Positions 22,590 to 57,588 of a stretch of DNA of 64,000 bases are shown piece after piece. Position 1 is the stretch's first letter. Every line of letters starts with the position of its first letter. The notes under the pieces are model-generated. The model ran no database searches. It saw only the letters and a program-made list of their open reading frames with translations, and was not told where the DNA came from. Source of the DNA: Hemiscyllium ocellatum (taxonomy: Eukaryota); contig NC_083424.1 of assembly GCF_020745735.1 (NCBI RefSeq), positions 29,064,999 to 29,128,998 on the forward strand, written 5' to 3'. Position numbers and translations under genes: made by a program.

Positions 22590-22940
22590 ATCTCTACATG
22601 CCCTTGTTTAGTTTACCAAAATGTAATACTCCACATTTGTCCAAATTAAGCTCCATCTGCATTCCTTAGCTCATTGACCAAATTGATCAAGATCTCTTTG
22701 TATTTCACTGCTCAGTATACCACCAATTTTGGTGTAATCTGCAAATTTACTAACAGTGCCTTCTCTATTCTTATCCAAATTCATTATATGAATGACAGAC
22801 AAAAGTGGACCCAGTACTAATCCCTGTGGAGCACTGCTGGTCACAGGCCTCCAGTCCACAAAAAAAAACAGGTCTCCATCACTGTCCTGTAAAGCCAGTT
22901 TTGCATCCCAATTGGCACCCTGAATCCCATATGATTTAAC
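22590..22940 (-). mobile_element. CR1 RT fragment
   Basis: ORF DWRPVTSSAPQGLVLGPLL...SKFADYTKIGG. Confidence 0.8.
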
Positions 22941-24214: not shown

Positions 24215-24539
24215 TAAGGGGAGCATAAATTAGCTACTACTGAAGTGAATTGCCCAGGGAGTATTGGATGTTTGTTTTCAAATTTGCAGCCTATGTATGG
24301 ATCTAATAGTAGAATAGTTTTGGTAATGATAAGTTGCTCATTCAGGTTTGGAGAAATGATGGATGACTAAGAGCCAGCCATTCTGTATTGATCTTGTTCC
24401 TGCTCTCCACTCACTTGGAAGAAGCTGATGCTTCTAAGTATAAACTTTCAACCAAGACATTAAAAAATAATAGTTCAAGGTAATTGCGTTACTGTCAAAT
24501 ATATTTTTAATTTTGTTTAGACTTGAGATTTCAAGTATT

Positions 24540-24775
24540 GAAGGAGAAGAGACCTGAGGGGCAACTTTTCATGCTGAGGGTGGTATGTGTATGGAATGAG
24601 CTGCCAGAGGAAGTGGTGGAGGCTGGTACAATTGCAACATTTAAAAGGCGTTTGGGTATATGAATAGGAAAGGTTTGGAGGGATATGGGCTGGATGAAAC
24701 TAGATTGGGTTGGGGAGATATCTGGTCGGGTTGGACCGAAGGGTCTGTTTCCATGCTATACATATCAATGACTGT
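24540..24775 (+). mobile_element. CR1/HER1-type LINE 3' fragment in BCL7A intron 2
   Basis: Matches the LINE tail at 32830-33075. Confidence 0.85.
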
Positions 24776-26935: not shown

Positions 26936-27280
26936 AGAATCATAGAATCCCCTACAGTGTGGAAACAGGCCATTTTGCCCCAACAAGTCCACACTGAGAC
27001 TGTGAGGAGTAACCCACCCAGACCCATTCCCCTACCCTATTACTCTACATTTACCCCTGACTAACACACTTAACCTACATGTCCCTGAATGCTATGGACA
27101 ATTTAGCATGGCCAATTCACCTAACTTGAACATATTTGGATTATGGGAGGAAACTGGACCACCTAGAGGAATCCCACGCAGACACAGGGAGAATGTGCAA
27201 ACTCTACACAGACAATTACCCGAGGCTGGAAGCAAACCCATATACCTGGTGCTGTGAGGCAGCAGTGCTAACCAGTGTGA
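26936..27280 (-). mobile_element. HE1-type V-SINE
   Basis: Same core and tail in reverse orientation. Confidence 0.87.
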
Positions 27281-29973: not shown

Positions 29974-30225
29974 TTAGATTAGATTACTTAGTGTGGAAAT
30001 AGGCCCTTCAGCCCAACAAGTCCACACCAACCCGTATACCACCCAGACCCATACTCCTACATTTACCGCTTCACCAAACACTACAGGCAATTTAGCATGG
30101 CCAATTCACCTAGCCTGCACATTTTTGGATTGTGGGAGGAAACCGGAGCACCCGGAGGAAACCCACGCGGACATGGGGAGAATGTGCAAACTCCACACAG
30201 AGTTGATTCGGGCAGGAATTGAACC
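29974..30225 (-). mobile_element. HE1-type V-SINE (5'-truncated at the B box) inserted in the LINE endonuclease region
   Basis: Interrupts LINE sequence aagaaagggat|gatcaccttattggg. Confidence 0.88.
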
Positions 30226-31614
30226 TGATCACCTTATTGGGATTGTATAACAAGACCCCCCAATAGTCAGAGGGAAATTGAGAAACAAACTTATAAGGAG
30301 GTCTCTGCTAACTGTAAGAATAATAGGGTAGTTATGGTAGGGGATTTTAACTCTCCAAACATTTGACTGGGACTGCCATAGTGTTAAAGGTTTAGATAGT
30401 GTGGAATTTAAGTGTGTACAAGACAATTTTCTGATTCCGTATGCGGATGTACCTGCTAGAGAAGGTGCAAAACTTGACCTACTCTTGGGAAATAAGGCAG
30501 GGCAAGTGACTGAGGTGTCAGTGGGGGAGCACTTTGGGGCCAGCAACCATAATTCTATTAGTTTTAAAATAGTGATGGAAAAGGATAGACCAGATCTAAA
30601 AGTTGGAGTTCTAAATTGGAGAAAGGCCAATTTTGGCGGTATTAGGTAAGGACTTTCAAAAGCTGATTGGGGGCAGATGTTTGCAGGTAAATGAATGACT
30701 AACTGGTAAAGGAACAGCTGGAAAATGGGAAACCTTCAGAAATGAGATAACAAGAATCCAGAGAGAGTATGTTCTTGTCAGGGTGAAAGGGAAGGCGGGT
30801 AGGTTTGGGAATGCTGGATGACTAAAGAAATTGAGGTTTGGTTAAGAAAAAGAAGGAAGCATATGTCAAGTATACACAGGATAGATCGAGTGAATTCTTA
30901 GAGTATAAAGGAAGTAGGAGTATACTTGAGGGAAATCAGAAGGACAAAACAGGGACATGAGATAGCTTTGGCAAATAGAATTAAGGAGAATCCAAAGGGT
31001 TTTTACAAATATATTAAGGACAGAAGGGTAACTAGGGAGAGAATAGGGCCCCCTCAAAGACCAGCAAGGTGGCCTTTGTGGAGCCGCAGAAAATGGGGGA
31101 GAATGAATATTTTGCATTAGAATTTATTGTGGAAAAGGATATGGAAGATATAGCCTGTAGGGAAATAGATGGTGACATCTTGCAAAATGTCCAGATTACA
31201 GAGGAGGAAGTGCTGGATGTCTTGAAACGGTTAAAAGTGGATAACCCCAGGACCTGATCAGGTGTACCCGAGAACCCTGTGGGAAGCTAGAGAAGTGATT
31301 GCTGGGCCTCTTGCTGAGATATTTGTATCATCGATAGTCGCAGGTGAGGTGCTGGAAGACTTGAGGTTGGCAAACATGGTGCCACTGTTGAAGAAGGGAC
31401 TGTGGACCGGTGAGCCTGACCTTAGACAAGTTGTTGGAGGGAATCCTGAGGGACAAGACGTAAATGTATTTGGAAAGGCAAGGACGGATTAGGGATAGTC
31501 AACATGGCTTTGTGCGTGGGAAAGCATGTCTCGCAAACTTGATTGAGTTTTTTAAGAAGTAACAAAGAAGATTGATGAGGGCAGAGCAGTAGATGTGATC
31601 TGTATGGACTTCAG

Positions 31615-31908
31615 AGGAGAAAGTGAGGACTGCAGATGCTGGAGATCAGAGCTTAAAAATGTGTTGCTGGAAAGGCGCAGCAGGTCAGGCAGCATCAAAG
31701 GAACAGGAGAATCGACGTTTCGGGCATAAGCCCTTCAGGAATGAGGAGGGTGTGCCAAGCAGGCTAAGATAAAAGGTCGCCTTTTATCTTAGCCTGCTTG
31801 GCACACCCTCCTCATTCCTGAAGAAGGGCTTATGCCCAAAATGTCGATTTTCCTGTTCCTTTGATGCTGCCTGACCTGCGCTTTTCCAGCACCACATTTT
31901 TGAGCTCT
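31615..31908. mobile_element. Fold-back Penelope-derived element inside LINE RT (129-bp inverted arms, 33-nt tail)
   Basis: Arms 31648-31776 and 31780-31908 with loop TCG; 16-bp TSD at 31599-31614 and 31906-31921. Confidence 0.9.
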
Positions 31909-33949
31909 ATATAGACTTCAGTAAGGCGTTTGACAAGGTTCCCCATGGGAGATTGATTAGCAAGGTTAGATCTCATGGAATACAGGGTGAACTAGCCATT
32001 TGGATACAGAACTGGCTCAATGGTAGAAGACAGAGGGTGGTGGTGGAGTGTTGTTTTTCAGACTGGAGGCCTGTGACCAGTGAAGTGCCACAAGGATCAG
32101 TGCTGGGTCCTCTATTTTTTTGTCATTTACATAAATGATTTGGATGCAAGCATAAGAGATACAGTTAGTAAGTTTGCAGATGACCCCAGAATTGGAGGTG
32201 TAGTGGACAGTGAAGAAGGTTACCTCCGATTGATCTTGACCAGATGGGCCAATGGGCTGAGAAGTGGCAGAAGGAGTTTAATTCCGATAAATGCGAGGTG
32301 CTGCGTTTTGGGAAAGCAAATCTTAGCAGGACTTGTACACTTAATGGTAAGGTCCTAGGGAGTGTTGCTGAACAAAGAGACCTTGGAGTGCAGGTTCATA
32401 GCTCCTTGAAAGTGGAGTCACAGGTAGATAGGATAGTGAAGGCAGCATTTGGTATACTTTCCCTTATTGGTCAGAATACGGAGTACAAGAGTTGGGAAGT
32501 CATGTTGTGGCTGTACAAGACATTGGTTAGGCCACTGTTGGAATATTGCGTGCAATTCTGGTCTCCTTTCTGTCGGAAAGGTGTTGTGAAACTTGAAAGG
32601 GTTCAGAAAAGATTTACAAGGATGTTGCCAGGGTTGGAGGATCTGAGCTACAGGGAGAGCTGAACAGGCTGGGGCTGTTTTCCCTGGAGCGTCGGAGGCT
32701 GAGGGGTGACCTTGTAGAGGTTTACAAAATTGAGGGACATGGATAGGATAAATAGGCAAAGTACTTTCCCTGGGGTTGGGGAGTCCAGAACTAGAGGGCA
32801 TAGGTTTAGGGTGAGAGGGGAAAGATATAAAGGAGACCCAAGGGGCAGTTTTTTCACGCAGAGGGTGGTACGTGTAAGGAAAGAGCTGCCAGAGGAAGTG
32901 GTGGCGGCTGGTACAATTGCAACATTTAAGAGGCATTTGGATGGGTATATGAATAGGAAGGGTTTGGTGGGATGTGGGCCGAGTGCTGGTAGGTGGGACT
33001 AGATTGGGTTGGGATATCTGGTCAACATGGACAGATTGGACCGAAGGGTCTGTTTCCATGCTGTACATCTGTGATTCTATGCACCAATGTCTGTACTGTT
33101 CTGCATATGTGCTGGTGTCTGTGCCATGTAAGGCATCAGTTCTGATCTTTGTGTCATTCTGCGCACTCACTGATGTCTGCGCCTGAAGTCTCCCTACAGT
33201 TCTGTACATGCACGATATCAGCGCTGGTCTTCGTGGTGTTCTATGCATGTATGGATCTCAGCTGCTGACAGCAGCTTTCTTTGAGAGATACGTTCTGAAA
33301 CTTTGGACCAAATAGAAGCTTCATGTGCTAACTATTTTGAAATTCTGTGCAGCTAAGATTCTGGAATGAGTTTCATATCTTACCAGGATATGTACGGAGA
33401 GCAGCTTTCTTACATTTTTAAATGTATTGTTAAATGTACTTTTTTAATTTCATTAATAAATATGATTTCAACCTTCATTCCAGCTGTGCTGTACCTTTGG
33501 GTGATTTTTGAGTGATTGTGAGCAATTTCTTTTTTGCTGGTCTGCCCTGAACCCCACTTTTCCTGTAATCCCCTTATTTATATCAAGCAATTTTCTATTG
33601 AGCGAGGTTTTGCTGGAACACAATAGTGTTATAGGAGAACTACCTATAAGTATTTTATTCAACTTTTTTCATCCTGTCTGTATTTTTAAATTTATGTTGG
33701 GAATCATATTCCTTTGCACATTCTTTTCTTGCTCAAATATAACTGTCTTTTTATTTAATTTTTTTTTAAAGCAATTCTTTTTTGGTTAGTGAGCGTGGTT
33801 CTTCATGCCCTTCAGTTTTTTTTTGAGAAGCAGTTGTTGGAAGAGGATGCTAATCAGCAAAAATATGGTAGATTCCATGAATGGAATTCCTATGCTTGAA
33901 CTGTAATGGTGAAAGGATAATTTTAAACTAGAGGAAGATTTGTAGTGGA

Positions 33950-34870
33950 CTACCCCAGAACCTTTGTTTTATTACACCCCTGTTTCTCTTGATTTACAAT
34001 TATGATTCAGATTTTGATGTGCAGGGGCTAATTTAAAAGTTTAGGTACGATACAAAACTTGATAGCTTTGTAAACCATAATGATGACTGTAGAACTTCAA
34101 AAGAACACTACAAGTTGGTCAAGTGGGCAGATTGGTAACAGATGAAGTTCAATATGGAAAAGTGAAGTGATGCATTTTAGAACATGGAGAGATGTTATAA
34201 AATAAAGGGTACAATTGAAGGATGTGAGGTGCGGAGACCAGGGTTTAAGTGTGGATAAAGCATTAAAGATGGAAGGACAGGTAGATAAAGCATATAGTAT
34301 TCCAGGTATTAGGAGCATAAATTATAAGTGGGAGGTTACAGTTCTCCTGTATAAGACACTAGGTTAGACCTCCGCTGGGGTGTTCTGAGTGCCATACAAC
34401 AGGAAGGATATGAACACATTGAAGAAATTGGAGATGATGTTTTCAATAATGATTCTATTGATGAGAAGCCTCAATTATAGAGGTAAATTGGAGAAGCTGG
34501 GACTGTTTATTTTGGATAAGAGAAGGCTAAGAGGAGATTTGATAGAGGTTTGCAAACTTCTAGACATATGAAAAAAGTAGACGGTTAGATGTTCTCATTC
34601 ATGAAAGATTGAGAATGAAAGGGCACAGCTTTGAAGTGATTTGCAGAAGCAGTAAATGTGATGAGAAAAAGACACACTTGGAAAGTATTTTATGTATAGA
34701 AAACACTTCAGAATTGTGGTCAAGCCATTAAAGAGGGCATTGTTTATTTAAATAATCATAATATACAGGGTTCTGACGAAATGACAGAAGAATGCCACAG
34801 TGATGATGCTCATTCAGAGATTTTGGACCAAATAGATGTTTCATGTGCTAATGATTCTGAAATGAGTTTC
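33950..34870 (+). mobile_element. Decayed CR1 LINE 3' region
   Basis: ORF LEKLGLFILDKRRLRGDLIEV, with WQM.FN..K.EV.HF-like sequence upstream. Confidence 0.7.
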
Positions 34871-36221
34871 GTACCTTATCAGGATATGTTTCATATATCT
34901 TTTTTAAACCAACTATTGGAAATGCATTCTGAATATGATATTGCACGGTTCCTTATTTGCTCCTCAACTTGCTGCTACCGTGTATAATTTCTTTTAATGG
35001 CATTGGGGAAAATAGCTATTGTATCACAATAATATAGTGCTAATAATATTTAGTTAACAATATGCTCACAGATAAAGATTGGTAAAGGATTATTGAACTT
35101 TGAAACAGACAATATAATTGAAGAGTGTTTAATGACAAAGGACCCCTAGGTGTGGTGGAAGAAAATAATTGACACAATCATCTTATTCATTTCGTTACAA
35201 CCTACATCATTGCTACAAATATACTAACTTGGAGCCTTATACCAGGTTGCCAATTGTGGGAGAGCTTTTAATGAATGAATTTATAGTGGGATGAATTTGT
35301 TTGCACTATTCGCTTAAATGCTTGGCTTGGCCAAAGAAACTGTAAATTGGAATACCAAGCAATGTTTACTACTGTCACAGAAATAGGCTAAAATTTTAAG
35401 TCCATTATGACACCACCCTAGTTTTCCTGAGGGAGGCCCCCGTGCAAATTATGGTACTGAAAAATGTGAAGTTCCTAATTCTTGCATTTTTTTAAAAAAA
35501 AAAGCAATATCAGCATTACATTCATTTCATTGATCATTTGACCTCCGTTCAGCCTGTTGATGAGCCTGGTTTATGACACAAAATTGGACATGTAGCTTGG
35601 AGTTCTTACAAGAACCTATTCACTTCATCAATTCTATACCAGCTCTTTGGAAAATAGATATCTATCTCCCACTTTTTTCCTCCTCCTCATTCATTTTTAG
35701 ATGATTTAATAATTTCCTTTTGAGTGCTTTGAATGAACTTGCCTCACTGTGACAGTTCAGCATCTTATTGTTGTGCAGTATTCAAAACTAACTTAAGAGG
35801 AGAGATGCTATGTCCTTGGAAGACTGACTTTAAAGCTGACTTTCTGCAAAGTGGGAAATATGAAACTATAAATGTCGGAGCACATCAAAATTTTTCATGT
35901 TGACCTTGCACTACAAAACTCAATGTAAAACTTCCTATGCGTTCAAATGTAGCTGTATTAATATAAGATGATATTGGGAATAAATCCTGTCTGTGTATTC
36001 AAAAATTGTATATTTGATGAACTTGAAGAATTCACATTCCAACGGCGTTCTGAAAAACTATGTTCCTTTGTGAAGGCGAAGAAGAGCAAAATCCAAAGTT
36101 GTGCTTGTCTGCAAGTGTTCCTTTCTCTGTGCTTTCACCTTTCACTTTCCATTTTATTGCTGCAGCATTTTGTCAAATGTGTAAAATTTTATCTAATTCA
36201 ATTTTTTTGATTGTAAATTAG

Positions 36222-36389
36222 ATGAGAACAGTAATCAGAGTTCCATAGCAGATGCTTCTCCAATGAAGCAGGAGAACAGCAGCAATCCAAGTCCTGCGCC
36301 AGAGCAGAATTTAATAATCCAACCAGAGGGTGCTGAAACTGGGACTGAGGAGGTTCAGCCCCCTATCAAAGAACGGCCCAGCTCTGACG
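36222..36389 (+). CDS. BCL7A: BCL7A coding exon 4 (168 bp): (D)[28 protein letters not shown]...RPSSD
   Basis: Matches BCL7A [19 protein letters not shown]. Acceptor ttag|, donor G|gtaagg; phase 1 to phase 1. Confidence 0.96.
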
Positions 36390-39300
36390 GTAAGGCTTAA
36401 AACAGATTGAGGAATAGAAATCAGGACTTTGGTCAGGAGTCCTCGGGTCAAAATCCAATTCATGGTAGTATTTTCTGAGTGGAGAAACTCTCACCTAACT
36501 TTGCTGAATACATTTATTGATCCTTGAATGAAAATCAAAACCTTATTCATGAAAATGTAAACATTGGGTGTGATTGTTTCTTAAATTGTAAATAAAGAAT
36601 GAATTGCATTATAATTGAGATTTTGAAGATTTTATCATCATGGAAGGATCACAGTACATTTAACAGAAAGTTGGTCTATTTGCGAGGTTATGCCAAATTA
36701 AGATAAGGGAGTACTCTTGGGTAAATAAAACAATTTGGATAATCCTCAGAGCAAATACTCATAAACAATGTCTGTGTATGAATACAGGAGGTAAATAAGA
36801 AATTGTGAAACAAATGCTCAGTGGAGTACCTATTAGAATTTTAGGTGCTTTTTACCAGAATTGGGGGCATCTCTGATAGTTACTTTGGTTTTACTTTAAG
36901 TTTTGTTGTTTTGGGATCCATGTTAGATGGTTAACAGTATTCAATCTTCCAAATGCAGAATTTTAGTAAAAAATGTCCATGCTGAACAATTTTAAGATCA
37001 TATTTCAAAAATCATACATCCAGAGTATTCCAGTCATTAATTGTTTGACTCAGTGTGATGCTATTATTGATACCTATAACATACAATGCTCATACATAAA
37101 TACAGTATTTTAAAGTTTGATTTGAAAAAAAAATTAGAATTATAATTTTTTAAACTTGTGCTCTTGCAGTTCTGACTGTTTCCTTTCTTCACTGAAAACG
37201 CTGACAGTTATTTCTGTAGTTCATGATTATACTGGAATCAGGAACTCTTCAGTACCTGTTTAAGTGATTATTGGGGAAATCTGGGTAGTGAACAGAATAT
37301 AGATGTTACCACCAGGTAAACCTTTAGATGCCTGCATTCGCAAGCAGGAGTTACCACATAGGAAGAGGAGATAACCTGCCTGATATTTCTTTTTACATTT
37401 TCTTGCTCCCTATGACATGGAGTCTGTAGCCAGTGGTTCGTTGTTACCCAGGCTGAGATGAGTTAACTTAGAATGAATGGGGCATTGAATTCTTATAGTC
37501 TGACTTATTAGAAAATATACAATATGTGACACCCATGACCAAGTGAATAAAAAATGATTTGAAAGAACTTCTGCCTTGATTTCAAATTGTCAAAAGTATA
37601 TAGAGAATATTGGATTTCTGAGAAATTGCCAGTTAATTGTTTCATCTGCGATACAGATCTGAGATCTGTAAGATTGCTGGATATTGATTATTTTCTGTTA
37701 TGTTCTAATAGAATTCACAGATGTATTTTTTTTAAGCACAGGTAGTGTTAGGGCATGTGCTTGTTGCTGATGTGTGGTTTCCATATTGGAAGATTGATGA
37801 TTTTGAAGCAAGTTCTTCAAGTCACAATTCAGCATCTTACAGGGAACTTAACTAGCAATAAGTAAAATGCAGAAACTGTTGAGATCAAAGGCCTTGGTAA
37901 AGAAAACCTTTCCTCTGTTTATCCTCTTCAGAAGCTTTTATTATTGTTGCTGCTGGAGATCTTTTTATGTCCCTTATGTACAGTTCATTTCCTGTCTTGT
38001 CAGTGGAGTGATCTCTAGGAGACGATCAGGATGGATTTTGAATTGATAATGCACAAAGGAATCCATGTGTCCTGTTCTCTGGGGAGGTCAACAGTCTACT
38101 CTCTAATTGGCAGTACATGGAGTTTGCAAAGTGACCTCTCTGGAAAGGTCCAAACCTCACTCTCAGAATATCACGTGGCCTTGCAGGTGATCATTCTTCT
38201 TTTCAACTATTCAACCTTGCATTAGACTTTTATGCTGCTCTCTGATATAGTAGTTGGAGTCCCACTGTTTAATTGTAAAAATAAGTAAAATGGGGCCCTT
38301 TATGCCCTTTCATGACTGCTCATTGGCTACCACGGAATTTGGCATTTTGATATCTAACACTTGAGCTACACTGCTACCTGGTCACGTGGAAGGGAATAAA
38401 AGGGCAATGATTCCATTTATACCTTTTTATGCAATCGTGAGCTTATGTACTACATAAATACTTTGGGCTTAAATTTGGCAATTTCTGTCTAATCCAGAAT
38501 ATGCTACGCTTAATTTTCTGTCTTGATGAATTGAGAATACCTCTTGGAAGTATGGAAATGAGACCAGAAGATAAAAATTTTGCTTGCCAAATGAAATTTG
38601 TGCTATCTGAGCTTGTTTACTTAAAATCAGTAGAAACACTGAAGTAGACTTGGCCAGTTACTGCAATTTTTTTTTTGAAAAGCAGTTGGAAAGCCCCTCT
38701 GGTCATGGGTCATGAACAGTTTGACTGCTTTTGCCTCTTCATTGGCATAATATTTGTGACGTGAGGGAGGAGGTGGTGAAAGCTGCATAGCTTTTTAAAA
38801 GACTTCTGTTTTCATTTTTCTAAATGAGATTTTGAATTGAATTTTTCAAGCCAAGTAACCGAAAAACACGTATTAATTTAAACTAGATAGCTAGACAAAT
38901 AACTTTTCCTGTAATTGTTTTAATTTGAAATCTCCTTTTCTATGCCTTCCTGCCTCCAAGCTGTCCTTCATCTGGGAGGACGGGACCGTCTGGGTAGCAG
39001 ACTTCTTCAGAGGCACCATGGAAGCTCCTCCATGTCTACCAATAAGAGGTGTGCTTTGTGGGACGGGATAGGTTTCTGTGTATGTGTATACATGTATGTG
39101 TACTTGTGTTTTTTTTTTCTTTACCACAAGGCTATTAAACTGCTCAGCTGAGAATTGGAAAAACTCAATTTTAGCAGTGACAAATAATTAATTTGAATTT
39201 GATTTTAAACTTGCTCCCTTTCAACGTGAGTCCCACATTAAAGCTACAAGCCTCCTTATTATAAGGTTAGCATAAAAAGCTTAAAGATTGATAGTGTTTC

Positions 39301-42300
39301 AAGAGTTATTTATGGGAATAATCACTATATTTTGTTTGTCTTTCCAACAATTTTGTGATGTGTTCAATTTCAATCTACCCGTAAATGATTATTTCTTAAT
39401 AAATGTCAAAATTCACTCCTCTAAGATCAGGTGATAGTAATTTGATTTCTTTTTCACGTTCTTTTGAATGTTCCAACATTTAAGGTTTATTTTTCCATGG
39501 CAGTTTTATTCCTTTCATGCCTTGAGGCATTGTCTTTCATGTGTTACAGTTAGTGATAAAATTCACTTTGCTATTTCATGCAAGTGTTCATTATTCATAT
39601 GAATATGGTCAATAAGTGTATGTAGGCTATGTGTCTTTGCAGCTTCAGTCCATCCTGTTCTTATCTGTTGTTGGCATGATTATTTTTAACCATGGCTAAG
39701 CGGTAATGATCAAAAGTGGAAAATAAGAGTGAATGTACCTCTTTACCTCTGGATGAGGCAGTGATTGTGTGGTTTGGGTGGGTGGGGGGAGTTTGGTGGA
39801 ACTCAACTGCAGCTCTTTTGAAGCTTGCTAATACAGTATTGTTCAGTGATCAGACCATGCCCATCCATCCATCTGGTTCAACTATTTGCTCAGTAAATTA
39901 ATTGACTTTCAAGGGAACAGCTTAGGTTTAAATAACTTTTCCCAACAAGTGCCTTGTTAACCCATCTGATTTTCCTAAATTGATGTATTAACTATTTGGC
40001 CCATTAATGTTGTAATTCACATTTTATACTTGGATCAATACTCATTTTTGGGTTTGACTTTTACATAAGTTTGGTTTTTCTTTGTGTTTAGTGTCTGGGA
40101 TATTATAAGCAGATCCATGAATCAAGTTCAAATAGTGCACCATTTTATAAGTATTTTAAAGCATCTCCCCATTTTGTCTAAGACTATTTTCACTTCACCC
40201 TGTATATTACGTGTTGCGCTTTTATAACTGTGTCATGTTGGCTAAATTTATTCATGCAGTATTCCCCTCCCAACAAATGCTCTATGGTGGCAACTGTGGC
40301 AAGAATTCTATTTCTGATTAAACATTTATATAAAAGTCCCATTCAATTGCTGCAAAAATGAGACTGACCAACTCCGTAGCCTTCTAAAATCTAATAAATT
40401 CAAGTAGTACCAACTTTTATTATGCAATAAAATTTATTTTCCAATATTAAGTATTAATTGCATTAGGAACCAAGTAGGGAAATAGCATTTTGAGCAAACC
40501 CTTATACATCTTTAAACATTGTATACTTGAAGCATATCCACATGATCCTTCATAATGCTGGTCATTCAGAATACAGTAATCCTACAAGTGGTACTTATTT
40601 CTAAAGTATTAAATGCATTGTTGACTGACTTAGAATGTAGAAAAGCAGCCATGTGTACTTAACAGCAATACAATAACACATTCTCAATTAATTGGACTTT
40701 AAAATTTGAAATGGCACTTTGAAGCTATATTTAATTTTGATTCATAGTTAATAATGGATCTTAAAATTTAATTTTCTCTGAATTTAAAAGGGCATGGCTA
40801 GATCTCGAGATTTCACATTTCCATTTCTCTAGCAGTGCTTATGTTGTGGGTTTGAGAGAAATGTTCAGTGAATTTGTGTATAGATGAATTTTTGGTTTAA
40901 AACACTTTTTGGTTGTTTTTGGGGTGGTATGGCCAATTCTCTACTTACTCCTCCCCAGTTGCATATTTTTGTCAAATGCTTAGCTAATTATTAAAGAAGC
41001 ATCTGAAAAATGCTTCACCTTTTGAAGTGTTTTAACTTCGGTGGACAAACTCTCATCTGAGATATTTGGCTGACTAACGCATTTGTTTTGCAGCCTTTTA
41101 ATCAATAATGACATTACCTATAAAAACTGCTTGAAGCTTTCTAGTTTATGCAGAAAGTCTTGACCATGCATTAAATGCTTCCTCTAAAGAATTACATTTC
41201 TATTCATGATTTTTAATTTAAACTATGGTGCCTAAGGTGGTTATTTAATATTTATCTAAAAATAATAGTGCACACAGGCCATTTGACCCACACCCCTGCG
41301 CCAACACTTTTAGTATGATCCAACTTGTCATAATTGATATTTGAAATGCTGTTTCATTAATGATTAATACTATACCTGTGATGAAGATATATTTCGAAGG
41401 TACTGAACTACAAGGTGCTCAGTGTCAGAAGATGTTTGTTTATAAAGTGATTTTAAAATATTTCCCTCATGCTAACTGTTGTGGATTTATGTTTTAGCAT
41501 AGTCAATCTGGAATATTAATTTGTGACTGGCTTAATTTTAGAATTATCACAAACTTGGACTGAGGTTCCTTTCAGCAGCATATGGGTTTGGGGTCATTTT
41601 TTTTTGAGGGGAAAAAAAATACTGGCTTAACTCTAAAACTTTAAAAGTTGTGCAGTCACAATATTTCTTGATGTATTAAACTTAATTTTCAATACTATCA
41701 AAATGATATCAGTATTATATCTATTTGATATTGTCCCTCTAATTGTCAGGCCATTGAAATGGTTATGCTGCAAAAGCAAAATGTAAATTTTTGTGCATTC
41801 GTTCATATATTCCACTTTTCTATTGGATGTGATGGTGGAGAAAGAAAGAGCATACTTAGATATTGAAAGTACAATTATTGAATTTCTATACTGAATTTTA
41901 AAAAATATGCTTTAAAGGTATTCACTTTGTTCTCACAGTTATGCCTCAGATTTTCTTTCTCTGCCTTCCATAGGGGAAAAGTGACTTTCTTTATCAAATC
42001 TGATTCTGAATTATATTGAAAATTACCATGATAGAAACCATTATTGTATTCAGAAATACTGTCTCTTTGGAAATAAGTAGGAATGGTTTGATCGTTTTTG
42101 ATGAGGTGTTCCTGTTACAACTTCTATTATATACGAATGGATACATGTTGAATTGGAAGGCTTTTTAAATTAAATGGTGTTAGCTTTTATTGATTGATGG
42201 GAGAGAATGTGCATCCATTTCTCAGTTTTATTCAGTATGAAAATTTAGGAATTTTGATTTTTACACTGCGTTTAAGAATGAATCTGCAATAGTTTTCCAT

Positions 42301-43022
42301 GCTGAAACAGCTTTGCAAAAATATTCCACACGTGTAGAGAATTTTTTCAGGTTTTATAAATCTCATTTTCCTTTTTAGGTCATCTATTTACCACTTAACT
42401 TCTGAGGGACAGTCAGTCAACTTGTTAGCTCCCATCTTTCTTGCTCGTATTGCTTTGTAACTCCTTGCTAAACAGTGCACGAATGAGGCCTTCATAATAT
42501 GCATTGATGTGCTTTAAATGGCTAGGAATGAAAACTTCAGTGAAATCCTGGATATGACCATGTAACTTTCAAACTCAGTCAGTGCACTGATTTTGGAGGT
42601 CTTGTGTGGCAATAATCTGTTTGCAGAATGATAGAATTAAAATTTGGAATGTATTTTGAAAAGCTTTTAAACTGTTTCTATATAAAATTATCAACCTGAA
42701 AATCTCCAACATTTGTGCCCATTATTGTAATCCATGCTGCATAATCCACGATCGTTTTGGTATTGTTGAAAGTTTGGCTGAAAGACAAAGATTCCTTGGT
42801 CATATTGAGGTTTTTTCAATGGAGCATTCTTTTCTATTATATTTCTCGCAAACTTAAGACCTAGCAGCTTGCCTTTTGTCAGATTGGTTACCACTTTTTT
42901 CAGAATATCTGTCTATAACTAGTTTGTCGTAATGAGGGACACCAATCTTTGTGAAACTGTGATAAGTTTAAAAAGGTGAAAAATGAAATCTAATATATAT
43001 ACACTTGCTGTTTTTGTTATAG

Positions 43023-43147
43023 ACACATCACCACCAGCAGAGCCAAATTCCCAAACTCCCCCAGAATTATCTCCAACTGATTTAGAGAAATCAGATATGC
43101 AGCCATTGGGAGTGAAAGAGAACACAGAGACTACCAAAGATACTCAG
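43023..43147 (+). CDS. BCL7A: BCL7A coding exon 5 (125 bp): (D)TSPPAEPNSQTPPELSPTDLEKSDMQPLGVKENTETTKDTQ
   Basis: Open frame between acceptor gtttttgttatag| and donor CAG|gtataa. Phase 1 in, phase 0 out, which joins exons 4 and 6. Weak similarity to the human exon (NSQ..., EK.D.QP.G). Confidence 0.87.
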
Positions 43148-43902
43148 GTATAAGTGATAGAGTTTTTACAATACTGCAAATGCTAGTCCTATTTGGAGCA
43201 ATAAATTATCTGAAACATTGAATGATAAGAGCGTACTTTTTAAAAATATACATTTGATCTATTATTTGGATATGAGTTTAAGAATACTCTTCTAATATAA
43301 CGAATCCAAAAAATCAACAGCATTTCCGAACAATTGACTAATTCAAATGCACATTAATTCTCATGTTCTTTGAAGTAAACTGATTTTGATACATAAAATA
43401 AAGCACCTTTGTGTTCATGGGCAAGCAATCTTATTAAAATGTCAAGTATATGTCCAATGAAGTCTGTTCTGGTTAGAATCATTAAATAATGCTTGCCCAG
43501 AATCATTTCATACTTAGGCTAAAGTTTATTATCAGTGACAATGTTGTAAATATAGTTTAATGTTCTTTGTAATCTCTCTCTCTGGTCAAATTAAACACAG
43601 AATAGCATTGACTGGAATATGTGCTGCTTTGCCTGAACTTCACTGCACATTTGCATTTTCTCTTACAGTTGAAGCATTGGATAGATAAATCATTCCATTT
43701 AAACTCACATGCACAAAAACAGTGTTGTATTAGTACTACTTTAGAATTAAAATGTGTCCTTGTCTATTGTGCAAAATTGTTTGGTTTGTTTGTGATTGAA
43801 CTTTGTACAATTTTTGCTAAAACTTTTATTGTGATCTTTTAAAAGTAACATCTGAGGGAGATTAATGCTGGTTTGGTAGTCAAACTTGATCTTTTTTCCT
43901 AG

Positions 43903-43977
43903 GAATCTGAAGATGGGGAACCACTTCCAAAAAAGATCAGAACAGAAACCTCTCAGCAGAGTGCTGAGGAGAGTTAG
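43903..43977 (+). CDS. BCL7A: BCL7A terminal coding exon 6: ESEDGEPLPKKIRTETSQQSAEES*
   Basis: Acceptor cttttttcctag|. Resembles the BCL7A C-terminus (P.KK....SQQ..EE). TAG stop at 43975-43977. Confidence 0.92.
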   Translation, partial: ESEDGEPLPKKIRTETSQQSAEES

Positions 43978-46900
43978 GCTGTCCAGAAACTCTGGGGTCA
44001 CTTTCCATGAAAAGGTACATCAACAGGCCTCAATTCAGACCGACCTTCTAGAAACTTTCACACATTATTGAACATGGAGGAACCACTGACCACAAACGAT
44101 TGTTGGGTCATAATCCAAGAAAATTTGGGAAGACTGGACAGACATGATGCTGACTAATTTCTCCTGTGAATACACATTCTAGTGATTTATATATTTAAAT
44201 TACTTTCACTGTTAAAGTTGGGTGGGGTGGGTAGAAGAAATGGACTCAGGAGGGTTTACGCACTGGTAGTTTATAAAACTTGTCAAGATCACATGTTTTT
44301 TGCTGCTGTATTTCATTTCTTTTATTTATGTTGTAAAATATTTAATGATGGTACAGGTCAGAATTAGTATACATGTGAAATCCATTATTCATGCCATTTT
44401 AATTCCATTTTTTGTGCCTGTTTTTTTAAAAAAAAACAATGACCACTATCTTACAGAAAGTGCCCTTTGTTTGTCTAGAAAGTAGTAAGATTCTGTTGTG
44501 ATCATGTTTAATCAGTGTAACGAAGTCTGAGCTATTGGTCCTTTTCGTGTTTGGCTTTGTAACTAAAACACTCTACAAGTATCTGAAATAGAAATCTGTT
44601 TCCTTGAATACAGCCATGTACAATAGGTTATTCCATTCATTTACTAATGGGAGAAAATATGGATTTCTGGATATGTTAGACTTGTTTAGTTGAAAATAAG
44701 TTTCTACACAAATGGTATCTATAGTGGATGTGTGATTGTATTCAACTTATAGGCTAACCAGGAATCTGGATGTAAAATGAAACTTTCAAATAGTGAATAG
44801 GATACATCCAGGATACTGTTCAGAATTTTAAAATAATTGATGAGCTGTCCTAATGCTTTGGTGAACTAATCTGATGAGTTGTTTCCTGGAGGTCCAAGAT
44901 TGTATGTCTCTTCCAAAAGTGTCTAACTGAATCTGTGCTGCTGTGAAGGACAATTGAGATTGTTCTTAGTCTACAGCAGATTTTAATGGTGCTTATGCAA
45001 GCCTGAGAGTAAAAGTGTCTTTGGATGATGCATGTTGTGGGATGTAAAGAAAGTATTAGTACTCTACCTTAGTTTGCATCTTCTGGAAAAAAAAAGTATT
45101 GAAATTCTTCTGTAGGCCATGCTTTGTTTGATCAGCTAATGCAAACAAACCTACTGAGTTTCTTCAGTAGTGAAAAAACTTGAATGAAGGTGATGAGGGT
45201 ATTAAATTTATTTTGTCGATTGTTACATTTTGAAGTAAAAAATAATTTGCAAGTGGGTCAGTTTCTCATATCACTTTGTGTAGTAAAGTGCAAATGAAAC
45301 CCCAAAGTTTAATTTGATTAAATCCTTGAAACATCTAAAAGCTGAGGCACTAAAGATGTGGAGGCAGATATGAACTTTGGGAACTCTATCTGAGATTGCT
45401 TACAAAATTCAACAAGCTCAATGTTTTAAATTTCCAATCTGAAAAGTTGATAGACTTCATACTGCATTCATTCTCATTTGAATGATAAGAGTAGTATTAG
45501 TAATTTAAAATGTTGATGATTGCATTTCCCTGTGGCAAGATATGTGTTACATCTTTGCATTAAATACTGTAACTGTTAAAACTACTTAAAGCCATTAGTG
45601 TTTATATTTATTTGAGGCTTTATTGATTTATTTTTGAAACGCAGGGTTCCAACATTAATATATGGAACTGAGCTCAAAGTTATGGTTGTATTCAAGGAAA
45701 TAAAATTAATGTGTAAACCTCCACTTCATTGCAGTTACCTTTTGCATAGTTGTTAGGTGCTTATGTGCTGAGAATGAGAACACATATATGGTTTTAACAA
45801 ATTGATTTGCTCAAGATTATCACTCACTCGCACTGACATGCCTGAGTTTTTCCATCTAAAATATTTCAAATAAAATTTTTGTTTAAAGTGATTTGAATAC
45901 TTGGTAATAAAATCAAACTCCGACAATATATATTCCCATTATAAGTGTTTGAAATTCTGTAACCTAGGCCACTTAGAAAATTCAAATTCTGGATCTGAAG
46001 TAATTTAGTTGGATAGGTTCAATTCATAGTAAATTGTTTATAATGTCAATTTGAAAATCTCAATTTTGCATCATTTTCTCCGGTGCCAGAGCAGCCCTGA
46101 GTGTCAACATTTGGTTCAGGCAGTGCAGCTACCCATATGGGCTTTGGGTTTAAATTTGCAAATCCAAGTTCAGTGCTGGTTGAGGCCCCAAGTGTAGAAT
46201 TAAAGTATAAATGAGTAGAGACTGTAAACTGCATGATCTGTCCAGTTGTATTAGTTTTGAGCAGCCTATCTTTAAGGGGACAGCTAAGATTGCACTGAAC
46301 AATGACCCAAGAAGTAGAGTTTTTTTCCATTGGAAAAGCAAGAATGGACCTCATTGCTCTGAAAACTACAGCTTGCTGGTACGTTTCAGGATCTATTTTC
46401 CTTCCCCACTCTTCCAGGCTCAGTCTATGAGCAGGGGAGCTCTAATTTCCTAAACTTCCCAAAGAGATAAACCACAGAGTACCCATTTGCTGCTTTGAGC
46501 TCATGGCAGCATTTAAACAAAGCCTGAAGCTGAATTTAGTTTAGGTTTTGGATCAGGACAGTGTAGCATTGCTTGACTGACTTTGCTGCAATTTTGGGTG
46601 CACATTTAATTGCTTCATTTTTGTTCTTTACCAGTTGGTTAGCAGATGTCTGGTGTTCTGATTTGTATTTTTAATTTCTGTATTTTGGGTGGGGAATGAG
46701 TGAAAGTTGGTGTTGAATTTATTACTTGGTTGTTTTCATGTTACAGAAACTGTGGAGGTGAAATGTCAGCATTGTTGCACATGAAGAGTATTTCTCATGG
46801 TTGTGGGACTACTTTGTGCATTACACTAGATTGGAGTAACTCAGGAACTGATTAGTACGTCTGGTTGTTTCATTTATGATCTCGTGCTCCAATTCAAATG

Positions 46901-48715
46901 AATAAAAGTTGAAAATGGTGCTTGCAAAATGTACCTAGTGAGTCTAGAGACCCAATTCACTGTATAAAGTGGCCCCAAAACCTGCCCAAATGTATAATTT
47001 GCATTTTTCATCAAAGTTTTAGTAAAATGCACAATGTGCCAATACTCGGCCATATTTTTAACTTGCATAGTTTTTCTTAAGATTATAATACTTTATGATG
47101 GGGACCTACTGCAGCTGAGTTGTCTCCTCAATTGAACCTGTTCTACTTTTGCATATAGAAATAAAGCTGTAATTTGGAAACAAGCTGAGTAGAATTGGAT
47201 CAATTTGCTGTTGTCCAACTGAACCAAATATCAAATGATATACAAATTCCTAAACAGAATTATATTGAATAATGACAGGAGAAATAGAATGGGTTTTTAG
47301 TATTGAAGGTGTATACTGTTTGAAAATTTCTATATAATACTTTGTCACGTGTGCATTAATTCAGTGCTTTTTGGACCTTTTGACAGTACTACTTTATATG
47401 GTAGGTCCATGGGGAAGATTTATTGGAAAATGCAAAGAAACATTTTTTAATTTACTCTTGCAGGACTTTCAAAAGTAATCCAAAAAAGAATGTTAACATC
47501 CCATTTTCCTTCAGGTAACTAGTTTAAAGAATTCTGGTTTAGTTATGATTTACTTTGGAACCTTGTTATAAACTACTGGGGACCGGCAACACACTTTTAA
47601 CTAGGTTTCAAAGTACTGGTCCTGTTTAACTTTACATGTTTTAGTTCTGTTTGCTATGAATGCATAAACCAAAAGCAGCTCAAGTTTTAGTGGCAAATTT
47701 ACTAAAAGTGGTGAGGTGTGTAGCAATCCCCAATGTTGAGTGTGATCTTTATGTAGGTATTTCTTAGTTTCAAGCCGGCTGCAGTGAAAGTTAGTTGTAT
47801 ACCTCGCGTCATGAAGGGGCTCAACGGTGTAATTTTTTTAAGCTATGAGCAACACTAATGAACTTTGTACATGTGGTATGAATTTTTATACAATTGGGTG
47901 TAGTCTTGCCTTCCATAACTAAGTTTGGGTTTTGCTATTAGAATTTCTGTACAGTGTAGATTGGGTATTGTCTTATTCCGTTTGAAACTAGTGCAGTTTA
48001 ATGTTCAAGAAAGCTTCTGGCTGTGTTTAAAAAAAAGATAAAATAGTTTTCATTCATTTAAAAATGAAATGCAGTGCCACAGTTAAAGCAGGAGAAGTTT
48101 ACCTTTATTGAAAACAAAAACTTGGGGGTCGTGCGAGTTTTTCTCTTACGCTTAAAAAAGTTGGAGCTTCTGTTACATTTTAGTTACCCCCGCAGCTTCT
48201 TCTATCTGAGGAATACTTTAAAACAAATCCCATCTTGTATCTGTGAAGTTGTTGTTTTGCAAGACTGAGATATTGCCAGGGCCAGAATGAGTGTTTTAAC
48301 TTTATCTAGAATTTTGATTTTCAATTTTCGCCTTTCAAGCTTGTACGTTAATAGAAATTGAAGCACCACATTCCAAATGTTTGTAGAAGTGCAGGCACTT
48401 ACTAATATATCAAAATAGCAGCAAACACTCTTGTTGTGATTTTAGGTCTTGAAATCCATGCCACTACTACATTCTAACTACAGCAAACTATATGAATACT
48501 GTCCGATTGTCAAAATAAAATAAATTTGTGATCAGATTGCCCATCTTTTAACAACAAGATTTTTAGAGACCGAAGCTATCATGAAAATACTTAACAATTT
48601 CCAACTGAAATGCAATGTGTTGTACAGCAGTATGTTTTCTTTATTTATTCTTGAGTATGGTTTGTACCATGTACAATGGCTTTGTTTTCATGAATAAAAA
48701 AAATTGTATAACACA
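43978..48715 (+). other. BCL7A: Probable long BCL7A 3' UTR (~4.7 kb)
   Basis: AT-rich stretch after the stop with no recognisable transposons, ending at a strong poly(A) context. The end point is inferred. Confidence 0.6.
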
Positions 48716-48750
48716 TTGTGTTTTTATTCAGTTATGTATTGTATTTTTAT
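48621..48750 (+). terminator. Probable distal polyadenylation site (AATAAA 48693-48698)
   Basis: AATAAA preceded by three TGTA (CFIm-type) motifs at ~48621, 48663 and 48670, and followed by a GT/T-rich downstream element (ttgtgtttttattc...tgtattgtattttt). Confidence 0.62.
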
Positions 48751-51039
48751 TTCCTATAAAATGACAAAAGGTTACAGATGATATGGAACCTGACCAAAAT
48801 TAAACTCTTTACAGGAACATATTGTGCTCATGTTGAAATTTTTTAATGATTACTAATGGGTTTTGAAGTAATAAAATCCTATGTATTTTTATCTGCCAAC
48901 ATTTTTCTTCCAGTGCATCTGAAGTTAGTTCAGAAGTAGTTGCAAATTTTCAGTCAGATCCTTCTGTCAGAAGTGACACTTGATTGTCAAAAAACATCTT
49001 AAAATTTGGAGAGAACTTAATAATATTGTGAAGCAAGTTAGATTACTAGAGTCTTAGTTAAGGCAAAGTGCACTTTAATGTTGCTACATCTCTTGACTTT
49101 GCTTCCAGGTTTTCTTTTTCATGGTTTTGATGAGGGAGGAGGGTGGTGGTGGTGTTGGATATTGCTGGGGTAAGCATTGTGTTAGGAACTTATTACCAAT
49201 TCATTTTTTTATTCTTGAATATTCATGATAGTTTTCAGCATTCATATGCAGAGTAATAAAAATTGGAAGAAAATGAAGGCTGGTTTAGTTTTTGCCTTTT
49301 GGATGTACTAGCCCTCATCAAGTAGGTGTTTTCGTTTACATAGTATTTTTTGCTATTATCTTGTATTTTTTTCCTCCAACCCATTATAGTTTGATTTTTA
49401 ACTTTTTTTATATTTAATATATTTTAATTGTATACTTTTCTGTTTTTAAGTGAAACTTGCCATTTAAGTATCAGTCAACTGTAGATGTTTTCATATAACT
49501 CTTTTTGGAAATATTTCATGTACTTATGATGTGTCAACCTATTTCAGTCCCAATGTATATATTTTCATTTGAGAAGCTTGAATCTTATTTTTTTCTGAAT
49601 GATTAATTGCTTTGTTGGATTTTCCTTTGATTTCCTTAAAATATACTAGACCCAGTTAGGACATCAGGTAGGATTTCTATTCACCTTGTATCAATGTACT
49701 TTAATTGCATGTTTTGTTGGGATAATCTCAATGTAACAGTATTCAATCTATTTCTAAAATTTCAGTGCAAGCTGAAGAGGCTGGTATGATTTCCCACTTC
49801 TGTTCCAACTTTGTTCTATTGTTCAATGAAGTAGGTGTATACTTCTAATTATTTAATTCATGGAGAGCATACTTGATGCCAGGAGTACATAAACCCATTT
49901 CCAGCAAGGTTTACTTAATGCAAAACAGCAAACTCTGGATAATCGGCTTGCTCACATTGATATCAATTAACTTTGCATAGTCCAGTAATCGAGCCTAGAA
50001 CCTAAATTTGTATAGCTTGGATCTGTTCTTGGTACTGTGTATTTACAAATTGAGCTAAGAGGGGCGAGGCAGGAAATGCAAAACCTAATGGCCTCTGCTT
50101 GATGAAGAACATAGCATTGGATTAAGCCGTTTAGCTCTTTGTGTCTATTCTGCCACGAGTTAAAGGTTTATGGCCTATCTGGACCCTAATTATATTTAAC
50201 TCATTTTTCCCATTTCTCTTGCCTCCTTTGGGTAATGAGCAATTTCAGATTTAAATTTAACAATTGATCTAGAATCAATTGCTCTTCACAGAAGACCATT
50301 TTAATTTTGTTGAATTTATTGTAGAAATACTTCTGTATTTCACTTCTGAAGCGCTTCGCTGTAACTGTTAAACATGCCCCTTGTCATAGTTCCTCACATG
50401 CACACACAGCAGAAAGTTTCACTCACTGTAGCTAGTTTGTTCCCTGATCTTAAACTATCAAATATTTCGTTAATTTCCAATTCCAACAGATGCAAATTTA
50501 GAGTATTTGTTCTTTAACCGTTGAACTCCAGTTATAATTCTGGTACATCTGCATTGCGATCCTTCAAGGGCAATACATCCATCCTAAGGTGAGTTCTGCA
50601 AAATGGTACCTAGGTGTGTTGAACCAGAGCTTTCTTTAATTGAATATTCTAGTCTTTTAAAGCACAGCAGCCCATTTGCTGTTCTGATTATTTTCCAATT
50701 ACCATAATCTGAACCTGGACCAATATTCTGTCTTAAGCTACATGGCCTTGAAACCTATCGGAAGGACCATGCAGTGGCTGGAGAAATGAGAGAGAACACA
50801 GACCTGGACCCATATCTTGCACATCTTTGCCCCCTCCTGTTTCACAATTTAGCACGTACTCCAGGCTCAAATTGGATCATCCCCCAATTGCCTGTTTTGC
50901 AATCTAGGATGAATATGTACAATGCAATATAAAAATGTGCTAACCAGTTTGTGGATGAAGCAGGATGAAATTGGGCAGACTGTTTTGATCAATTTTACAT
51001 TTACAATATAATTCGATCATATCCCACATTCTCATCTCT

Positions 51040-52640
51040 ATCTCAGAGTCACAGATGTACAGCACGGAGATAGACCCTTCGGTCCAACCAGATATCCCAA
51101 CCCAATCTAGTCCCACCTGCCAGCACCCGGCCCATATCCCTGCAACCCTTCCTATTCATATACCCATCCAGACGTCTTTTATATGTTGCAATTGTACTAG
51201 CCTCCACCACTTCCTCTGGCAGCTCATTCCATACACGTACCACCCTCTGTGTGAAAAAGTTGCCCCTTAGGTCCCTTGATATCTTGTCCCTCTCACCCTA
51301 AACCTATGCCCTCTAGTTCTGGACTCCCCGACCCTAGGGAAAGGACTTTGTCTATTTATCCTATTCATGCCCCTCATGATTTTATAAACTTCTAAGATCA
51401 TCCCTCAGCCTCTGATGCTCCAGGGAAAACAGCCCCAGCCTATTCAACCTCTCCCTATAGGTCAAACCCTCCAATCCCGGCAACATCCTTGTAAATTGTT
51501 TTTGAACCCTTTCAAGTCTCTCAGCATCCTTCTGATTGGAAGGAGACCAGAATTGCACACAATATTCCAAAAGTAGCCTAACCAATGTGCTGTACGGCTG
51601 CAACATGACTTCCCAACTCCTGACCAATAAAGGAAAGCATACCAAACGCCGCCTTCACTATTCTATCTATCTGCGACTCTACTTTCAAGGACCTGTGAAC
51701 CTGCACTTCCAGGTCTCTGTTCAGCAACACTCCCTAGGATCTTACCATTAAGTGTATAAGTCCTGCTAAGATTTGCTTTCCCAAAATGTAGCACCTCACA
51801 TTTATCTAAATTAAACTCCATCTGCCACTCCTCAGCCCATTGGCCCATCTGATCGAGATCCCATTTTAATTTGAGATAACCACCTTTGTTGTCTGCTAGA
51901 CCTCCAACTTTAGTGTCATCTGCAACCTTAACGATACCATTTGCGCTCACGTCCAAATCATTAATGTAAATGATAAAGTAGTGAACCCTGCACTGATCCT
52001 TGTGGCACTCCACTGATCACAGGCCTCCAGTCTGAAAAGCAACACCACCCTCTGTCTTCTACCTTCGAGCTAGTTCTGTATCCAAATGGCTAGTTCTCCC
52101 TGTTTTCCATGAGATCTCACCTTGCTAACCAGCCTCCCATGGGGAATCTTGTTTGAATGCCTTATAGAAGTCCATATAGATCACCCTGGGAGGCTCCCTG
52201 CCTCCAATCCTGATGAAGGACTTTTGCCTGAAACATTGATTTTCCTGCTCCTCGAATGCTGCCTGACCTGTTGTGCTTTTCCAGCACCACTCTAATCTAA
52301 ACTCAATATAGATGATGTCTACTGCTCTGCCCTCATCAATCCTCTTTGTTACTTCAAAAAAACTCAAGTTTGTGAGACATGATTTCCTACGCACAAAGCC
52401 ATGTTGACTATCCCTAATCAGTCCTTGCCTTTCCATATACATCCTGTCCCTCAGGATTCCCTCCAACAACTTGCCCATCACTGACGGCAGGATCACCGGT
52501 CCATAGTTCCCTGGCCTGTCCTTAACACCTTTCTTAAATAGTGTTACCACGTTTGCCAACCTCCAGTCTTCTGGCACCTCACCTGTGACTATTAATGATA
52601 CAAATATCTCAGTAAGAGGCCCTAGCTTCCCACAGAATTC
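51040..52640 (-). mobile_element. 5'-truncated CR1/HER1-type LINE with a nested Penelope-derived insert
   Basis: Minus-strand ORFs DWRLANV, SQHGF, VADDTK, LLEYCVQFWSP and WNELPEEVV. Confidence 0.92.
52185..52304 (+). mobile_element. Penelope pseudo-LTR insertion inside LINE RT
   Basis: cctgatgaagga...gaaac...gctgcctgacctg..ttccagcaccactctaatc; duplicated TC(C/A)ATATAGAT at 52171-52181 and 52303-52313. Confidence 0.85.
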
Positions 52641-53096: not shown

Positions 53097-53520
53097 CTAG
53101 GAGAAAGTGAGAACTGCAGATGCTGGAGATCAGATCAAAAAGTGTGATGCTCAAAAAGCACAGCTGGTCAGGCAGCATCCGAGGACCAGGAGAGTCGACA
53201 TTTCCACTTTTCCCCCCTCCCCATATTAGCCCAGATCCAACCTTCCAACTCAGCACCGCCCCCTTGAGCGGTCCTACCTGTTCATCTTCCTTTGTACCTA
53301 TCTGCTCCACCCTCTTATCACCTTCACCCCCTACCTTCATCTACCTATTGTATTCCCAACTATCTTCCCCCAACTCCACCCCCATTTAGCTCTCAGGTGC
53401 CTTGGGCCCCACCCCCTGCTCATTCCTGATGAAGAGCTCATGCTTGAAACATGACTTTCCTGCTTGGGTGCTGCCTGCCTGGCTGGCTGTACTTTTCCAG
53501 CACCACTTTTTGACCCTGAA
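53097..53520 (+). mobile_element. Penelope pseudo-LTR with inverted tail-bearing copy and 10-bp TSD
   Basis: TAGTGAAGAA at 53087-53096 and 53521-53530. The body is the reverse complement of 9865-10135; degenerate hammerhead at ~53426. Confidence 0.85.
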
Positions 53521-53539
53521 TAGTGAAGAATTGCATCTG

Positions 53540-57400: not shown

Positions 57401-57588
57401 GGTTAAAACAAGGACTGCAGATGCTGGAAACCAGAGTCTAGATTAGAGTGGTGCCGGAAAAACACAGCAGGTCAGGCAGAATAGCTCTATTCCTGATGAA
57501 GGGCTTTTGCCCAAAGCGTCGATTTTTTTCCTGCTCCTTGGACGCTGCCTGACCTGCTGTGCTTTTCCAGCGCCACTCTAATCTAATC
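57401..57588. mobile_element. Fold-back Penelope-derived element
   Basis: gattagagtggtgc..cagcaggtcaggcag versus ctgcctgacctgctg..ccactctaatc; degenerate hammerhead at 57493. Confidence 0.82.

Follow-up and report, generated by a model that had tools for sequence, protein, structure and literature searches.

In a 64,000-nucleotide stretch of the Hemiscyllium ocellatum genome (contig NC_083424.1, positions 29,064,999 to 29,128,998 of the forward strand; hereafter the window), two copies of a CR1-like long interspersed nuclear element (LINE) are broken at the same site, within motif A of the reverse transcriptase (RT), by short remnants of Penelope-like elements (PLEs). A third copy of the LINE has the same site empty. 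We refer to the empty copy as A, to the filled copies as B and C, and to the PLE remnants as stubs. Judged from sequence, the two inserts are independent events of different PLE subfamilies, because their subfamily, orientation and target-site duplications differ. That they share a site is probably a coincidence, helped by the general preference of PLEs for AT-rich DNA and by the abundance of the LINE, with no mechanism dedicated against the LINE behind it.

Mapping on the uninterrupted copy A identifies the repeats at the edges of both inserts as true target-site duplications. Copy A reads continuously through GATCTATATGAACTTCAG at 12565-12592, with no insert. Self-BLAST aligned it with B in two pieces (31221-31614 and 31906-33078, plus strand) and with C in two pieces (52626-52296 and 52184-51043, minus strand). 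The halves of B overlap on copy A by 16 bp (12572-12587), those of C by 11 bp (12568-12578), and TCTATAT is common to both duplications. In B the insert is a fold-back of 291 bp (31615-31905), whose arms are approximately 90-95% alike. In C the duplications in their 11-bp form, TCCATATAGAT (52171-52181) and TCAATATAGAT (52303-52313), lie on either side of a 121-bp insert; each of their edges can be shifted by about 3 nt, which gives a length of 8-14 bp with 0-3 mismatches.

The two arms of insert B are 91% identical to each other and 65-68% identical to insert C, whose nearest relative in the window is the stub copy at 57485-57586. The inserts are also oppositely oriented within the LINE, and their duplications are of unequal length. 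Between the LINE copies themselves, the Kimura two-parameter (K2P) distances were 0.126 for A-B, 0.152 for B-C and 0.160 for A-C, so the filled copies are not the closest pair. Most of what the original prediction had described here stands. The site in copy A reads as it had quoted it, both of the 3' ends that it had assigned to different subfamilies are present, and its claim of independent events agrees with the copy distances. For B, the coordinates and strings of the 16-bp duplications were right and the length of 294 bp was not; for C, an insert of about 120 bp on the minus strand with duplications at 52171 and 52303 was recovered, although with the uncertainty of its edges given above. 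It had further stated that each junction is followed by ATATAGA. This motif is seen at both junctions, but the target in B was ATATGGA when it was hit, as in the family consensus and the left duplication copy of B, and the G to A change in the right copy arose after insertion.

By every structural hallmark that could be checked, inserts B and C are 5'-truncated PLE stubs, which supports the Penelope identity originally proposed. At least 10 copies of a stub unit of 100-300 bp occur in the window, with short and long 3' forms that both recur. In the sense direction, the unit reads ...CATTC-CTGATGA-AGGGC-TTAT-GCCC-GAAACGTC-GA... and reaches its 3' end, ...CAGC(TC), some 85-95 nt further on. The alignment of 14 arms placed the end of the long form, ...CTTTCTCC(T), 32-34 nt past that of the short form. 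Insert B carries one end of each kind, so that the two alternative termini of PLEs are found within a single insertion, and it also displays the severe 5' truncation and the inverted arms typical of these elements, here placed head to head with a 3-nt loop between them and a palindromic junction. Further fold-back stubs were found at 1377-1551, 27516-27641, 53099-53523 and 57411-57586. The target-site duplications are short and variable, as in PLEs, measuring 16 bp in B, 8-14 bp in C, 15 bp for the stub at 1117, 12-13 bp for that at 27516 and 12 bp for that at 53099. No PLE-like open reading frame (ORF) was found in the window, in which only three ORFs reach 150 aa; the lack of a telomerase-like RT or GIY-YIG reading frame is expected because the stubs are just 120-290 bp long. 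Two stubs that are 74% alike, at 9856-10142 (minus strand) and 53205-53420 (plus strand), reach about 200 bp upstream of the hammerhead motif into a C-rich, non-coding-looking segment that is probably more of the pseudo-long terminal repeat (pLTR).

In previous studies, PLE RT was found to initiate at two sites 30-40 nt apart, the longer product carrying an optional "tail" (PMC11167929; PMC8557442). PAc, the PLE protein of the green anole, cleaves and extends both DNA strands in vitro, prefers AT-rich DNA and is a predicted dimer (PMC11167929), and in rotifer Penelope elements the pLTRs are inverted and meet at a palindrome, the tail (31 bp) is confined to one end, and the duplications measure 8-10 bp (PMC3846280). 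The stubs resemble PAc (Frangieh et al. 2024, PMC11167929) and the Penelope of Adineta vaga (Arkhipova et al. 2013, PMC3846280) in the hammerhead upstream of the RT starts, the alternative 3' ends 30-40 nt apart (32 nt in the stubs), the severe 5' truncation, the head-to-head arms that meet at a palindrome and bear a tail at one end only, the variable duplications (8-16 bp in the stubs), the priming from both target strands and the AT-rich target. They differ in being very short (120-290 bp) and in that their link to a GIY-YIG endonuclease is made by structure, with no PLE ORF in the window. In addition, the published preference of PAc is 5'-ATT-3', whereas the LINE site holds TATAT. Overall, the PLEs here are of a known kind, and the insertions belong to ordinary Penelope biology.

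The hammerhead named in the original prediction could be confirmed at the level of the motif. The pattern CTGANGA-N8-20-GAAAC occurs four times in the window against 0.5 expected; stubs account for three of these occurrences, one being that of insert C at 52210. In the stub alignment, helix II pairing is kept through compensatory changes from GGGC/GCCC to GAGC/GCUU, and helix III has shrunk to the palindrome ACGU. In insert C the core CUGAUGA...GAAAC is intact at 52210-52234 and the palindrome is changed to ACAU. Neither arm of insert B has the pattern, the left having a 3-nt deletion in the core and the right a change of GAAA to AAAA. No Rfam hammerhead model matched anywhere in the window at the gathering score, and none matched inserts B and C or the best-preserved stub at E<=10; the Rfam matches within insert B were generic hairpin and miRNA models only, reflecting the fold-back. 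Such a miss is expected for the minimal hammerheads of PLEs, which have no helix III (PMC6155905). The type I hammerheads of PLEs (Cervera and de la Pena 2014, reviewed in PMC6155905) share with the stubs the CUGAUGA box, a 4-bp helix II, the GAAA box and the absence of a helix III loop; the palindromic ACGU would allow them to act as dimers. The stubs differ from them in being scored by no Rfam model, in a helix I of just about 4 bp, and in the mutations of the B arms and the C palindrome. The stub family may therefore be called hammerhead-bearing by motif, and the copies in B and C are probably inactive as ribozymes, given the mutations in the cores of the B arms and in the helix III palindrome of C.

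Coordinates of the three LINE copies, their inserts and the target-site duplications (positions in the window)
Feature	Position	Strand	Description	Basis
CR1-like LINE copy A	12180-13734	+	5'-truncated, RT motif A uninterrupted	self-BLAST, RVT_1 match, tblastn with full-length relatives
Empty target site TCTATATGAA in LINE A	12572-12581	none	10-bp near-palindrome	
CR1-like LINE copy B	29595-33078	+	near-full-length ORF2 (endonuclease and RT), many stops, broken at 31615-31905	tblastn with P0044/P0035, aa 13-977
Left target-site duplication of B, TCTGTATGGACTTCAG	31599-31614	+		self-BLAST
Insert B, left arm	31615-31776	-	antisense PLE stub, outer 3' end of long form with 32-nt tail	
Insert B, right arm	31780-31905	+	sense PLE stub, short-form terminus ...GAGCTC	
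Right target-site duplication of B, TCTATATAGACTTCAG	31906-31921	+		self-BLAST
LINE copy C, 3' part	51043-52184	-		self-BLAST, tblastn
Target-site duplication of C, first copy, TCCATATAGATCAC (certain core ATATAGAT)	52171-52184	+		self-BLAST overlap with A
Insert C	52185-52302 (edges +/-3 nt; ~121 bp)	+	single 5'-truncated PLE arm, antisense to LINE, short-form 3' end ...CTAAACTC	
Target-site duplication of C, second copy, TCAATATAGATGAT	52303-52316	+	11/14 positions match first copy	
LINE copy C, 5' part	52317-52626	-	5'-truncated at ~aa 456-513 of ~914-977-aa ORF2	tblastn

The three copies of the host LINE have the RT region in common by self-BLAST and end at a common 3' point. That end presumably resembles the chicken CR1 octamers CATTCTRT/GATTCTRT, and the LINE is a putative member of the CR1 clade. 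Pfam RVT_1 matched pieces of LINE A and LINE B, and the 3' half of B begins in the YxDFxKAFD block, at position 73 of the profile. In a representative protein search we identified at least 21 relatives at E up to 1e-30, the closest named protein among the matches listed being from the whale shark (68% identity). The full-length relatives in a whole-library protein search (900-980 aa, including P0044 and P0035) bear Exo_endo_phos and RVT_1, so ORF2 carries an apurinic-type endonuclease followed by RT, as in the CR1 clade; by tblastn with them, LINE A starts at about aa 433-484 of ORF2. At the target, the relative P0035 has AVDVIYMDFQKAFD, and therefore the consensus 10-mer of the LINE family, TCTATATGGA, encodes I-Y-M-D of RT motif A. 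Position 12580 is G in 92% of the reads of a related shark, and the A found there is private to copy A. From about 1.9 Gb of public reads of that shark, the depth of the LINE family was approximately 14,000-49,000-fold, and the family thus comprises tens of thousands of copies.

Some further features of the LINE copies were observed. An inverted piece of about 290 bp from the LINE's own 3' end (11885-12176, minus strand), matching B at 32774-33068 and C at 51055-51333, precedes copy A at 12180 and reads as a 5' inversion of the twin-priming type. Directly upstream of the ORF2 start of LINE B there is an ORF1-like tail from about 29220, with a stop-free piece of 106 aa at 29220-29537 (plus strand) that looks like the C-terminal part of CR1 ORF1, and LINE B may be close to full length. 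A second repeat family of about 220 bp was found at 30006-30225, 13763-13984 and approximately 27100-27340, two copies being 82% alike; one copy splits LINE B within its endonuclease region, and directly downstream of LINE A there is another. In LINE C the antisense stub is read through in frame, giving a 171-aa stop-free stretch (52128-52640, minus strand) that consists of LINE RT, 40 insert-derived residues and LINE RT again, which is probably a coincidence. A fourth, more diverged CR1-like RT fragment at 57663-58209 (plus strand) has a degenerate, uninterrupted motif A region, and the fold-back stub at 57411-57586 ends about 70 bp upstream of its detectable start. Short RT fragments of other CR1-like families lie at 22597-22856 (minus strand), 24397-24657, 33935-34562 and 8109-8321 (minus strand).

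The original prediction had proposed a preferred target, TCY|ATATRGA, and our results did not establish it. The targets of five further resolvable stubs in the window are unrelated and lack TATAT (for example, AACTGCCTTGRTATG, TAGATGRCTGAG and TAGTGAAGAAYT), in accordance with the earlier remark that other inserts use different targets, and all six (TA)n tracts of at least 4 units are free of stubs. To look beyond the window, raw reads of the related shark and contigs of the source organism were aligned to LINE A at 80% likeness. The loose ends over all 1540 bp of LINE A were dominated by insertions and deletions private to this copy, and we considered the six strongest loose-end rows per run in a 181-bp stretch around the site, which gives an upper bound rather than a junction profile. 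No junction at the site was among these rows. The strongest lay at 12491, 12530, 12539 (both directions), 12603 and 12668, and their loose parts were all LINE sequence. The weakest of the six was supported by 795 reads (depth about 18,000) or, among the contigs, by 120 of 29,988, and therefore any single junction at the site accounts for less than about 4% of reads and about 1% of contigs. A protein search of public assemblies with a 57-aa peptide across the B junction (LINE and antisense tail) brought up no candidate for another filled copy; as the listing of the representative search covered 21 proteins at E<=1e-30, this carries no weight for or against.

A rough estimate suggests that chance could be sufficient. 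With the 1.5-kb LINE region at about 2% of the genome and stubs about 6 kb apart on average, a 64-kb window would hold about 0.25 stub-in-LINE events. The chance of a pair in the same 10 bp would then be about 1.3%, and across some 1,500 scanned windows of the genome the expectation is of the order of one such coincidence, which a generic AT preference would raise several-fold. In the window, two of the three copies are filled, which is far above the genome-wide rate. The shared site is compatible with chance, and a preference for it is unproven.

Three points weigh against coincidence. The idea that a generic AT-rich preference fully explains the site, which the original prediction had set against itself, has to be rejected, as about 20 other 10-mers of the LINE are equally or more AT-rich; TATAT occurs in copy A at the target site only. 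The read test speaks against occupancy above a few per cent only and leaves room for moderate enrichment. Finally, a pair of insertions from opposite strands at mirror positions of one 10-bp palindrome would occur in only about 1% of cases if insertion were uniform along 1.5 kb.

One alternative is a real hot spot, at which a dimeric PLE ribonucleoprotein would recognise short palindromes with an ATAT core (TCYATATRGA) and nick them symmetrically, so that the strongly conserved IYMD codons of CR1 would be greatly favoured over the rest of the LINE, genome-wide and in either orientation. The geometry of the two insertions is in its favour. If the duplications are read at their maximum, the right arm of B was primed from a bottom-strand nick left of 12572 and C from a top-strand nick right of 12581, which are mirror positions of the near-palindrome; if the canonical ...CTC terminus is taken instead, the nicks flank TATAT (12574-12578). 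Under either reading, the two duplications have left edges that differ by 1-4 nt. The predicted dimer of PAc and its cutting of both strands (PMC11167929) would suit such a site, as would the (TA)n insertion bias known for some PLE clades (PMC8557442), and about 2 of the 16 resolvable junctions are within 2 nt of TATAT/ATATA, where only 2% of window positions lie. On the other hand, the unrelated targets of the five other stubs, the unoccupied (TA)n tracts and the low ceiling on site junctions in reads and contigs are contrary to it, the ATATAGA of B is partly a post-insertion change, and the hypothesis was made after both hits had been seen. We consider the symmetric recognition of such palindromes unlikely, and it is equally doubtful that the motif A codons of CR1 are a genome-wide, orientation-symmetric hot spot whose occupancy falls below the detectable few per cent.

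In Naiad and Neptune, which insert into (TA)n, and Chlamys, which inserts into (CA)n (Craig et al. 2021, PMC8557442), an endonuclease bias for TA repeats could favour a TATAT core. Here, unlike in those elements, the (TA)n tracts are unoccupied and clear duplications in non-repetitive targets are the rule. R2 in 28S rDNA and Tx1 in a host transposon likewise insert repeatedly at a defined sequence inside a repeated unit, but nearly all of their copies are at one target, whereas most of the stubs lie at other sites, and the filled fraction of the LINE copies is a few per cent at most.

Under the favoured reading of coincidence, two separate and old PLE retrotransposition events, from two subfamilies, would each have left a short 5'-truncated stub in the same 10-mer. 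In each event, the PLE ribonucleoprotein would have nicked both DNA strands 8-16 nt apart, and reverse transcription would have been primed at the short-form start or at a start 32 nt longer, with just about 120-160 nt copied. In B, a fold-back of the cDNA or the priming of both strands may have produced the head-to-head arms. The taste of the PLE endonuclease for AT-rich or TA-like DNA would make such a coincidence likelier, and so would a LINE that offers the exact target sequence tens of thousands of times. The word for the filled B site occurs in similar shares (0.57-0.79) in runs under three organism labels, and the insertion is therefore old and shared or fixed.

The original prediction had also raised an antagonistic system, with Penelope derivatives that seek out the dominant LINE and inactivate its RT. 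In its favour there are only the location of both hits in catalytic motif A and the length of copy B, which includes endonuclease and RT. Being 5'-truncated, copies A and C were dead on arrival and never functional. The arms of insert B differ at 6 of 123 positions (4.9%), which amounts to about 2.5% for each arm on the assumption that both started out identical, and the terminal branch of LINE B is 5.9%; the insert is about half as old as LINE B. Because of this difference, LINE B had probably decayed before the hit, with about 3% change or some 100 substitutions if a star phylogeny is assumed. Moreover, a family of tens of thousands of copies cannot be shut down by inserts in scattered members, and at most a few per cent of these copies are occupied genome-wide; the stubs are mostly outside LINEs, in unrelated targets; and no selective benefit to the PLE is apparent. 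Nothing points to a function of the stub insertions in the LINE, and an antagonistic system is very improbable.

It is hardly credible that a single ancestral insert, whether inherited within a LINE subfamily or copied to other sites by gene conversion or duplication, was later remodelled into both, since the common LINE position that it would explain stands against inserts unlike in subfamily, orientation, length and duplication, a LINE B nearer to the empty copy A than to C, and family reads that mostly run through the site uninterrupted. Template switching of the LINE RT onto PLE RNA was also rejected, as duplicated LINE sequence flanks both inserts.

Same-site nested insertions such as these need genome-wide counts before targeting is inferred. 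If the hot spot were true, the LINE family would provide a natural and very large data set for the target specificity of the PLE GIY-YIG endonuclease, and would give insight into the two-strand cutting of a palindromic site, which is now poorly understood. The value of the locus is modest as it stands: it offers a clean pair of examples, in a shark genome, of published PLE features, namely a one-sided tail, fold-back arms and the use of either strand for priming.

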